From: Orbicella franksi
Taxonomy: Eukaryota
DNA length: 64,000 nucleotides
Assembly: GCA_964199315.1 (NCBI GenBank)
Contig: OZ116703.1
Location: forward strand, 28,024,001-28,088,000
Direction: 5' to 3'
Made by a program: the position numbers and the translations under genes. Position 1 is the stretch's first letter; every line of letters starts with the position of its first letter. This document shows positions 4,776 to 6,734 of this stretch, piece after piece. The notes below the pieces were generated by a model. The model was not told where the DNA came from, searched no databases, and saw only the letters and a list, made by a program, of their open reading frames with translations.

Positions 4776-6734
4776 ATGGATGCTATAATAAGGCAGACTG
4801 TCCGAGAGGAAATAAGACGTCAGGGTGAATCTGCCTCTACGAGTTCTAAAGCAGCGACCAGTGAACCAAACCAACGAACAGTAAGCCGACTGTCTGGATT
4901 GCTCGACCGCATCAGAGGTCAGTCAAGAGGGAAGAAAAGAAAGACCGATAAAGAACATCGAATCCAAGTTCGCTGGATTCATTACGACAAGAAGTCAGAA
5001 GTTTTTGTTCCAGTTCGTCAGAAGAACGGTGGCGGAAACCGGTTCGTTGCTTATACTGCGTCGGAACCTCCCACAGTTGAAGAACTTAAGCAAAAAGCCA
5101 CTACTTTGTTTTTCCCTGACGGGAAAAGTGCTTTCGCTGGCTCTGTTGACGACATGCTCCTAGATATCTGCGACACAACCCAAACGGCCATTATTCGATT
5201 TCCTGGTGAAGGAACTATTGAAAGTTATTTAAAGGAAAATGGTCTCTATCCGTCGACAACTTACCTCTATCTAAGATCACAGCACCAAGACACATTCTTT
5301 CCACAACTTGAAGCAGAGGAGGAAAATTTTGAACGGTCAGTCAACCTGAATACTTCGCAGGTAGCATCAGGTGCTGGTAAGCGCGTTGTTTGTTCAGTAT
5401 GTAGCTGTACGTATTTGGAAGGTGAAGAATGCATTCGATGTGAGCAGAACAGAGAATATGAGTTTTCTAGGATCGCTGATGGGGGGAATTCATGTACTAC
5501 AGAAACCCCAGAAACACCAGAAAACCCAGTTTTACTAACTATGGATGAAATAAGATCTAGGCGGGTAGCACTTCTTTCAAATGGTGTGGCTGAAATCGAG
5601 GCAGAAGGATCGCATAGCAATGTGGCTGATGAAACCAGTTACCCAAGGCTTACAAATGAAGAGAATTGTAGTCGTGATGAAGGCTCTGTAGAGCAGGATT
5701 CTCCATGTCCCTCTTCATCAAGAGATCTTCCAGAGAGAGTTCTCACAGTTCACAGATCATGCATAAGAACTGAATTGATTGAACATTTTAAAGACCCAAA
5801 TGTAATGAACTGTAATATTGATTTTAAAGTGATTAATGAAAAGGGAGAGTTTGAACAAGGTGTGGGTGTTGGGGTAATTTGTGAAGTGTACACTTTATTC
5901 TGGAGTGAATTTTCCATCTCCATGACCATAGGAGAGAGAGAAAGGGTTCCCTTTGTTAGACATGACCACTTTGTTGAGGAGTGGGAGGCTGTGGGGAGAA
6001 TTTTAGTTAAAGGGTTTGTGTCTGTCTCCTATTTTCCCACCTTTTTGTCAAAAGCTTTTTTATGCTACTGCCTCTTTGGCAACCAAGTTCCAGATTCCAT
6101 GTTTGTTGATTCATTTACAAAATACCTATCCCCAGTAGAGGAAGAGTTCATTGTAGATATTATGAGGAAGAATCAGCTTCCAGATGATGAAGATGAATTT
6201 ACTGATTTTCTTGAAAGGTTCAAGTGTATAAGGGTGGTTACCATTGAAAACCTTAGCCAAGTCATTCTTGAAATTTCCAAGCAGGAACTAGTTCAGAAAC
6301 CACATCTCATGATTTCATCTTTGCAACCTTTTGTACAGCATTTGAAGCAGTATCCCCAGTTCCAAACTATTTCAGCAGTTGAGGGCTTCTATGATAGTCT
6401 TAAACCTACAACGAAAAAGGTGCTATCTTGTCTCACCTCAAATCCACAAAGTGAAGGAGAGAGAGATGCATTTAAATTTTTGCAGCGATTTGTAAGAGGT
6501 CTGGAGATGCCAAAACTCCTACAATTTTTGCGATTTACAACAGCTATGGATATTATGATTGACAAGAAGATAGAAGTTACTTTCATTAAGTGCGAGGGCT
6601 TGAGTGTAAGACCCATTGCCCACACCTGTGGACCCCTTTTGGAAATTCCATCCACATATGCTAACTTTGTGGAATTAAGGGAAGACTTCATGAACATTCT
6701 TAATCGGGACAACTGGGAAATGGATATTATATGA
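4776..6734 (+). CDS. Transposon-borne HECT-domain E3 ubiquitin ligase-like protein (652 aa, intronless)
   Basis: C-terminal HECT C-lobe signature 'LLQFLRFTTA...PIAHTCGPLLEIPSTY..F.ELREDF' with catalytic Cys (TGT 6627-6629). HECT N-lobe 'G.GVGVICEVYTLFW...W.AVGRILVKG'. Upstream CxxC-x9-CxxC motif and basic GKKRK patch. Confidence 0.88.
   Translation: MDAIIRQTVREEIRRQGESASTSSKAATSEPNQRTVSRLSGLLDRIRGQSRGKKRKTDKEHRIQVRWIHYDKKSEVFVPVRQKNGGGNRFVAYTASEPPTVEELKQKATTLFFPDGKSAFAGSVDDMLLDICDTTQTAIIRFPGEGTIESYLKENGLYPSTTYLYLRSQHQDTFFPQLEAEEENFERSVNLNTSQVASGAGKRVVCSVCSCTYLEGEECIRCEQNREYEFSRIADGGNSCTTETPETPENPVLLTMDEIRSRRVALLSNGVAEIEAEGSHSNVADETSYPRLTNEENCSRDEGSVEQDSPCPSSSRDLPERVLTVHRSCIRTELIEHFKDPNVMNCNIDFKVINEKGEFEQGVGVGVICEVYTLFWSEFSISMTIGERERVPFVRHDHFVEEWEAVGRILVKGFVSVSYFPTFLSKAFLCYCLFGNQVPDSMFVDSFTKYLSPVEEEFIVDIMRKNQLPDDEDEFTDFLERFKCIRVVTIENLSQVILEISKQELVQKPHLMISSLQPFVQHLKQYPQFQTISAVEGFYDSLKPTTKKVLSCLTSNPQSEGERDAFKFLQRFVRGLEMPKLLQFLRFTTAMDIMIDKKIEVTFIKCEGLSVRPIAHTCGPLLEIPSTYANFVELREDFMNILNRDNWEMDII

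Follow-up and report, generated by a model that had tools for sequence, protein, structure and literature searches.

The 64,000-nucleotide stretch of Orbicella franksi DNA analysed here (contig OZ116703.1, positions 28,024,001 to 28,088,000; hereafter the window) is AT-rich and has the overall character of animal DNA. It was found to contain a complete DNA transposon of the IS3EU/GingerRoot type, 5402 bp long, at 4323..9724 (plus strand; all positions are those of the window). Two convergent genes lie between the inverted repeat arrays of this element. Open reading frame 1 (ORF1; 4776..6734, plus strand) is a single, uninterrupted exon that encodes a transposon-borne HECT E3 ubiquitin ligase of 652 residues, and ORF2 (7716..8927, minus strand) encodes a DDE transposase of 403 residues. 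The initial annotation of this DNA had described ORF1 as a HECT protein that retains its catalytic cysteine and carries a zinc site and a candidate binding motif for p97/VCP (Cdc48). The cysteine codon (6627-6629), the zinc pattern (5391-5441) and the helix motif (5541-5576) were all found in place within the one uninterrupted reading frame.

The ends of the element were well defined. A terminal 34-mer, starting with TACGATGGCCCAGAAGG, occurs at 4323 (plus strand) and at 9352 and 9724 (both minus strand), where the chance expectation is 0, and the element begins with TACGATGG and ends with CCATCGTA, that is, with TA..TA. Direct reading of the sequence revealed a 6-bp target-site duplication (TSD), TCTTGT, on both sides, at 4317..4322 and 9725..9730. 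The left terminal inverted repeat (TIR; 4323..4646, plus strand) consists of the terminal sequence and approximately 14 copies of a 21/22-nt subterminal repeat with the core CAGTTCAGTTGTG. At the right end (minus strand), a 372-bp terminal unit composed of a repeat array and the terminal sequence is present twice in tandem (8981-9352 and 9353-9724), and the two copies are 100% identical. The subterminal repeats are probably the binding sites of the transposase. According to published descriptions, IS3EU elements always have TA..TA termini and usually have TSDs of 6 bp (PMC10045372); GingerRoot has been recorded in corals and fish, and the superfamily as a whole in corals, sea anemones and fish (PMC10045372, PMC6839031). 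Because the terminal sequence, the TA..TA ends, the 6-bp TSD and the subterminal arrays fit the published description of IS3EU, the element was assigned to the IS3EU/GingerRoot group.

The boundary was also examined in other samples. Reads from RNA libraries and one contig leave the element exactly at 4322 and continue into a different flank. Therefore, the boundary is real, and the element occupies other positions in other genomes. It may be stated that the element is intact and has been recently mobile. The tandem duplication at the right provides it with two right termini, and the 6-bp TSD fits the outer one. This duplication could have arisen by a replication or repair slip or by an aborted transposition.

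The identity of ORF2 was established by profile searches. The protein comprises a helix-turn-helix region and an integrase core and matched the Pfam family rva_4 with an E-value of 1.8e-34; weaker matches were obtained for rve and HTH_21. Among the NCBIfam models, the IS481 transposase (7e-11) and IS3 (1e-9) models were matched, both under the model cut-offs. The catalytic D, D and E motifs were located at D147, D206/D207 and E247.

The C-terminal half of the ORF1 protein was assigned to the HECT family by means of a structure model, fold comparison and profile searches. The domain, with both lobes, comprises residues 321-652 (5736..6731, plus strand). The AlphaFold2 (AF2) model of residues 318-652 had a mean predicted local distance difference test score (pLDDT) of 90.3 and a predicted template modelling score (pTM) of 0.89. 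When this model was compared with PDB structures by Foldseek, all of the top 50 matches were HECT domains (UBR5 at 2.8e-10, HUWE1, NEDD4 and E6AP among them), and the two-lobed fold was recovered over 360-430 aligned columns, with template modelling (TM) scores by query of at most 0.70. The nearest Atlas model (TM 0.92 over 330 residues) came from a cluster of unnamed chordate HECT proteins. A profile built from the broader of two family alignments and searched against PDB sequences matched the C-lobes of HERC6 (4e-4), HERC5, HUWE1 and E6AP. The Pfam HECT family, PF00632, was matched by 20 of 30 relatives of ORF1 at E-values of 0.01 or lower (the best being 3.2e-8), and its gathering cut-off of 23.9 bits was passed by three distant relatives (P0067, P0071 and P0060).

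In the alignment with the broader profile, Cys618 of ORF1 (TGT codon of A-H-T-C-G, 6627-6629, plus strand) coincided with the catalytic cysteine in the TC pair of the HERC6 and HERC5 C-lobes. It is situated approximately 35 residues from the C-terminus within a canonical HECT loop, P-x-A-H-T-C-x-x-x-L-x-x-P-x-x-Y. Almost all full-length relatives retain this cysteine, the exceptions being one protein with glycine and a few truncated copies. The initial annotation was therefore right that the catalytic cysteine is kept, since the loop is canonical, the residue aligns with that of HERC6 and HERC5, and the domain is complete. With both lobes and the catalytic cysteine in place, enzymatic activity of ORF1 is predicted.

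The region upstream of the HECT domain was found to have a composite organization. It starts with a conserved helix (MDAIIRQ...), a second helical segment, RTVxRLSGLLxRIR, that is conserved among homologues, and the basic patch KKRK (together 4776..4946, plus strand). The patch, at 4932-4943, is a candidate nuclear localization signal, proposed on its basic character. This is followed by a ubiquitin-like (UBL) beta-grasp domain, residues ~58-170 (4947..5285, plus strand), which had pLDDT values above 90 in an AF2 model of residues 55-275. Its fold matches, with VIA Z scores of 6-8.2, included kindlin F0, Mpe1, USP11 and Ddi2, and the best Foldseek matches were the SATB1 ULD, RA domains and the USP7 UBL domains, at E-values of 5e-3 or weaker. 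The loop RQKNGGGNRF of this domain comprises the ten most conserved residues of the ligase; the mean conservation of its part QKNGGGNRF (residues 82-90, 5019-5045) was 0.97, and the core G-G-G-x-R is kept in the Hydractinia and fish-type relatives.

Two more specific readings of this domain were considered and rejected. A UBX domain had been suggested by an Atlas cluster of related ligases, 38% of which match UBX, and by an F-P loop at residues 142-143. It was rejected for ORF1: the best fold matches were generic UBL, RA and FERM-F0 domains, UBX did not occur among the top 50, and none of 19 family members matched UBX (PF00789) at an E-value of 5. The sequence K-N-G-G-G-N-R-F was also considered as an SHP box (G-x-G-x-x-Phi), for which the consensus is aromatic-x-G-x-G-x-x-L. 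This reading fails because no relative has the aromatic residue and because the loop forms part of a folded beta-hairpin.

The next module is a C4 zinc finger with a following helix (5391..5480, plus strand). The sequence C-S-V-C-S-C-x7-C-I-R-C at 5391-5441, followed directly by EQNREYEFSRIAD at 5442-5480, contains the pattern C206-x2-C209-x9-C219-x2-C222 (residues 206-222). In 22 homologues with 48-94% identity, C206, C209, C219 and C222, as well as R221 and Q224, were invariant. C211 does not qualify as a conserved ligand, as some homologues have T or R in its place. The zinc site proposed in the initial annotation accordingly stood with respect to these four cysteines and had to be corrected with respect to C211, the third cysteine of CSVCSC, which varies. 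In the structure model (pLDDT ~81-84), the first cysteine pair lies in a hairpin, and the second pair opens a helix at residues 220-235 (EQNxEYExSLxAD). Sequence conservation indicates that ORF1 has a C4 zinc site whose four ligands show knuckle spacing, and metal binding is predicted.

In a search of the zinc finger against Pfam, no named family was found at threshold, and only zinc ribbons were matched below it. A word search with residues 200-272 retrieved only members of the same family, and in this search the module of zinc finger and helix was found in no other protein context. Three fish-type relatives (P0067, P0071 and P0073) have a different N-terminus and keep UBL and HECT without the zinc finger and the helix of residues 256-268. 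The segment that separates UBL from HECT therefore appears to be a swappable module. The N-terminus of the fish-type proteins is possibly SAM-like, as in the mollusc Atlas clusters with SAM_1 and HECT.

The layout of the zinc finger allows for the possibility that it binds ubiquitin together with its helix, and perhaps with the helix at 256-268, in the manner of UBZ fingers or of A20 fingers with an adjoining helix. Such a module would hold the growing chain or a substrate already ubiquitylated and so confer processivity on the HECT domain. The fact that the second cysteine pair opens a long conserved helix agrees with this, the arrangement of finger and helix being reminiscent of ubiquitin binders such as Rabex-5. 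A conserved aromatic position also follows the first pair (C-x-C-[ST]-[FYH]), and related Atlas clusters carry CUE domains. However, no Pfam match to UBZ, A20, NZF, UIM or CUE was obtained even at an E-value of 10. The spacing A-x-x-S in helix 256-268, on inspection, does not fit the A-x-x-x-S of the ubiquitin-interacting motif (UIM) or its inverted form, and the zinc-finger part of the model lies outside the coverage of the fold search. Ubiquitin binding by this module is consequently considered unlikely.

To place ORF1 among its relatives, the homologues and their loci were compared. In total, 73 homologues of ORF1 were found, and the nearest named proteins were those of the corals Stylophora, Oculina and Acropora. 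At four other loci (L001, L003, L004 and L005), a ligase gene on the plus strand is followed by an rva_4 transposase gene on the minus strand, in the same order and orientation as in the window. The ligases of these loci are 93% (L005), 69% (L001), 52% (L004) and 47% (L003) identical to ORF1. The repeat scan covered L001, L003 and L004, and in all three the gene pair lay between inverted arrays of a ~21-nt repeat whose core is related to that of the element described here; L005 was compared as a gene pair only. At the locus of one further relative (L002, protein P0019), no transposase was called, and an exact search for protein P0010 gave no record. The termini, the TSD, the arrays and the recurrence of the gene pair at other loci bear out the proposal that the HECT protein is carried by a transposon.

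Selection on ORF1 was estimated as the ratio of non-synonymous to synonymous substitution rates (dN/dS) by the Nei-Gojobori method in comparisons with L005 and L001. The ratio for the whole of ORF1 was 0.26 against L005 and 0.24 against L001. For the individual parts, it was 0.16 in the HECT domain and 0.19-0.24 in UBL. The zinc finger had values of 0 and 0.21 against L005 and L001, respectively, and the helix motif had values of 0 (with no non-synonymous change) and 0.16. In the linkers around the helix motif, dN/dS exceeded 1, on few sites. By the measure of these substitution ratios, ORF1 is under purifying selection.

Transcription of the element was studied using RNA data. The interior of the element was matched by 11 runs registered as RNA, most of them at 77-96% of the sampled words. 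In a poly-A run, X24, for which 138 raw reads were obtained, the segment 4664-7393, corresponding to ORF1 and its 3' untranslated region, was covered at a depth of 1-8. The depth was ~1 in the bin 7212-7393 and zero or near zero across 7394-8667, which contains most of the transposase gene. The sequence AATAAA at 7314..7319 (plus strand), located in the bin in which the depth falls off, is the likely poly-A signal of the ORF1 transcript. No splice joints were detected in the X24 reads over ORF1. Contaminating DNA, being spread evenly, would not produce such uneven coverage. This looks like a real, unspliced transcript of ORF1 that is more abundant than that of the transposase. Should further runs show the X24 pattern too, expression of the accessory gene is well above that of the transposase gene.

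These data bear on the question of whether ORF1 is a passively captured fragment of a host gene, or a decaying passenger, that plays no role in the element. Capture of host genes by DNA transposons does occur, and among the database relatives there are many truncated or fused gene models. Nevertheless, elements with ligases of only 47-69% identity have an intact full-length reading frame that is placed and oriented alike, the dN/dS of ORF1 is ~0.25, all catalytic hallmarks are kept, and the gene is transcribed. The interpretation of ORF1 as passive cargo is highly improbable and can be regarded as nearly excluded.

The explanation that we favour, and which we regard as likely while leaving considerable room for doubt, is that ORF1 is a genuine and probably catalytically competent HECT E3 ligase that is a standing accessory gene of one IS3EU/GingerRoot lineage rather than captured junk. 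Several observations weigh against it. In the domain scan, the ORF1 protein of the window reached no threshold of Pfam (no match to PF00632 at an E-value of 0.1) or NCBIfam. Likewise, a profile of close relatives covering the full-length family found no HECT among PDB sequences. The HECT assignment is thus founded on the relatives and on predicted structure. The RNA evidence consists of a low depth of 1-8 in one informative run of raw reads with the label of a related species; the library was apparently unstranded, and a second run with raw reads, X22, gave zero reads. Finally, the confidence of the model for the helix at 256-268 is moderate (pLDDT ~72).

According to the favoured explanation, the ORF1 protein would enter the nucleus, take ubiquitin from a host E2 enzyme onto Cys618 and ubiquitylate a partner to the benefit of the transposon. 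The partner would be recognized through the N-terminal modules, i.e., UBL, the zinc finger and helix 256-268. This partner could be a host factor involved in restriction or silencing, the complex of the transposase, or chromatin.

The last of these modules, a basic amphipathic helix at residues 253-268 (5532..5579, plus strand), is conserved and was considered as a docking candidate resembling the VCP-binding motif (VBM). It contains MDEIRSRRVALL (residues 256-267) at 5541-5576. A helix was predicted at residues 256-268, where pLDDT was ~72, between flanks with pLDDT below 50. In the alignment, it formed an island of conservation (0.5) amid linkers of ~0.3. R260 and R263 were invariant in 24 aligned motif variants, and A265 was conserved in at least 90% of them. 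Altogether, 38 distinct variants of the helix were found in the same place in hexacorals and in the octocoral Dendronephthya, and the core across Anthozoa can be written as [DEQ][DEQH]-Psi-R-x-x-R-Psi-A-x-Phi. No such helix occurs in the Hydractinia (hydrozoan) or the fish-type relatives, both of which retain UBL and HECT. Hence, the homologue conservation on which the initial annotation had made its motif depend was confirmed in part: the helix is a conserved and constrained island in Anthozoa, but the hydrozoan and fish-type relatives lack it. It is best read as a short docking motif that is peculiar to the anthozoan members of the family. Its likeness to a degenerate VBM makes the N-domain of p97 one candidate partner, and the evidence does not single p97 out.

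Other motif assignments were rejected. The VCP-interacting motif (VIM; R-x5-A-A-x2-R) was found by inspection not to fit the spacing of either RTVxRLSGLLxRIR or helix 256-268. For both helices, the UIM and the inverted UIM were off by one position, and no Pfam match was obtained.

The resemblance to the VBM was examined against two published consensus sequences, E-h-R-R-R-R-L-x-h-h (PMC5389986) and Psi-R-x-x-R-x-x-R, with three conserved arginines (PMC5559722). If helix 256-268 were a true VBM and bound the N-domain cleft of p97/Cdc48, the ligase would mark the complex of transposase and DNA that persists after transposition, or a silencing factor, and p97 would extract it. In the window copy, E-I-R-S-R-R-V-A-L-L, 8 of 10 positions fit the first consensus. 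A relaxed pattern (E-h, at least three of four residues basic, h-x-h-h) had one match, at this site, among 128,000 six-frame residues of the window, and it occurred in 0.35% of composition-preserving shuffles of ORF1. The site is a predicted helix within a disordered linker. The core Psi-R-x-x-R is conserved in Anthozoa together with a hydrophobic residue at +7, the position at which RHBDL4 has the phenylalanine that inserts into the UBX pocket. The full sequence E-E-I-R-R-R-R-V-A-Y-L is found in one relative, P0058, which showed a sub-threshold match (E-value 0.032; 14.6 bits, the cut-off being 34.1) to the Pfam family of the ataxin-3 region C-terminal to its UIM. This region presumably holds the VBM of ataxin-3. 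In addition, carriers of the VBM include the ubiquitin ligases Hrd1 and Ube4b.

However, the arginine run that defines the VBM, on which the p97 proposal of the initial annotation was based, was not conserved in the 38 variants. The number of basic residues in the RRRR window was 2 in 20 variants, 3 in 17 and 4 in a single variant. The third arginine of Psi-R-x-x-R-x-x-R was never present; at its position, each of the 38 variants has L, Y, H, V, I or A. The helix is missing from the Hydractinia and fish-type relatives; therefore, recruitment of p97 is not a family-wide requirement. Furthermore, the motif is internal in ORF1, VIM and VBM motifs being mostly at protein termini, and the UBL of ORF1 is not a UBX. 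A 24-residue profile of the motif, searched against PDB sequences, gave only chance matches with E-values above 1 and no p97 cofactor, this being a weak test.

Considering both sets of observations, it is doubtful that the helix is a true VBM; judged from the sequences compared, binding of p97 by helix 256-268 is possible, improbable and not indicated. We consider it a shade more doubtful still that the helix works as a degenerate p97/Cdc48-binding helix and makes the ligase a transposon-encoded adaptor that couples ubiquitylation to extraction by the segregase, either clearing the transposase-DNA complex after strand transfer or stripping off a silencing factor. If this were true, the system would be a eukaryotic counterpart of the ClpX-driven disassembly of the phage Mu transpososome.

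The conserved face of the helix suggests a further possibility, namely, that it docks on proteins of the element itself, either on the transposase, as a tether, or on the HECT or UBL domain of the ligase, with an auto-inhibitory or stabilizing effect. Hydrophobic and basic residues are conserved on one side (256, 259/260, 263/264 and 267), and since the helix is specific to one branch of the family, it could co-vary with the transposase of that branch. Regulatory helices are also located just upstream of the HECT domain in other HECT ligases, but in ORF1, approximately 50 poorly conserved residues separate the helix from HECT. Docking of this kind is conceivable and on balance rather unlikely. 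The rival roles of the helix and the zinc finger, namely, binding of p97, of ubiquitin, of the transposase or of other parts of the ligase, are not separable with the present data.

The surroundings of the transposon contain other repetitive DNA. Directly to the left, at 381-4082 (minus strand), a DIRS-like retroelement was identified. On the minus strand, it includes a gag-like ORF (3450-4082), a reverse transcriptase-RNase H region (1544-2509; RVT_1, 3e-15), an ORF that weakly matches Dam methyltransferase (855-1547) and the likely tyrosine-recombinase part (381-1152). The IS3EU element may have been inserted into the 5' region of this retroelement. Approximately 500 bp to the right of the transposon, a second 21-nt tandem repeat with the unit GACCAGTGGGTCTTCGTTTTA forms arrays at 10214-10353 (6.7 copies) and 10839-11068 (11 copies). 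These arrays produce spurious, repeat-encoded ORFs on both strands and possibly represent the subterminal repeats of another, non-autonomous element.

Among the database relatives of ORF1, chimeric gene models were also observed (P0055, P0065 and P0039). They include a fusion of reverse transcriptase and HECT in Exaiptasia, and a gene model in Stylophora joins ZU5 with the N-terminal part of the ligase; other relatives bear names like those of host genes. Copies of the transposon ligase gene have thus come to be annotated as host genes. In the genomes of cnidarians and fish, many genes called 'G2E3-like' or 'HECT domain-containing' probably belong to transposons and inflate the counts of host genes.

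DNA transposons are usually thought to need a transposase only. In the present case, a lineage found in corals, other cnidarians and fish keeps and expresses a ubiquitin ligase that is under selection. This suggests that a mobile element systematically manipulates the protein turnover of its host, in a manner comparable to that of viruses, which encode their own E3 ligases or hijack those of the host. With two genes, a single catalytic cysteine, a short helix and a zinc finger, the element provides a testable system. What is new here is the domain map of ORF1, the selection and RNA evidence for the copy in the window and the examination of the VBM.

Compared with known systems, the element shares with IS3EU/GingerRoot (PMC6839031; Kojima 2023, PMC10045372) the TA..TA termini, the 6-bp TSD, TIRs of more than 100 bp and an IS3/IS481-like DDE transposase without the HHCC finger. 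Unlike the elements in the papers that could be searched, of which the transposase only is described, it also carries the HECT ligase. No paper linking HECT with IS3EU, GingerRoot or transposons was found in the searchable literature, outside of which lie Repbase reports and many subscription papers. IS3EU/GingerRoot itself is known, and within that literature, none of the papers names a HECT ligase among its accessory genes. Passenger genes of other kinds, TET/JBP and alpha-kinase, have been described in fungal elements (PMC12730594).

Like the cellular HECT E3 ligases HERC5/6, HUWE1, UBR5, E6AP and NEDD4, ORF1 has the two-lobed fold and the catalytic cysteine loop. It differs from them in its N-terminal architecture (UBL, C4 finger and helix) and in being encoded by a mobile element, and its identity to solved HECT domains is 12-18%. 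The ORF1 model has a TM of ~0.73 to models of G2E3 and HERC, G2E3 being the usual automatic name of its relatives. The VBMs of Hrd1, Ube4b/Ufd2a, ataxin-3 and RHBDL4 resemble the helix of ORF1 in being short, arginine-containing amphipathic helices within enzymes of the ubiquitin system, and the copy in the window fits the form E-h-R-x-R-R-h-x-h-h. Unlike these VBMs, the helix of the ORF1 family conserves arginine at positions 1 and 4 only.

Accessory enzymes of the ubiquitin system are found beside the transposition enzyme in other mobile elements as well, namely, the OTU-like proteases of Helitron-type elements and the ULP1-like SUMO proteases of plant MULE and CACTA elements. Those enzymes remove ubiquitin or SUMO, whereas ORF1 would attach ubiquitin, and it belongs to a different transposon superfamily.

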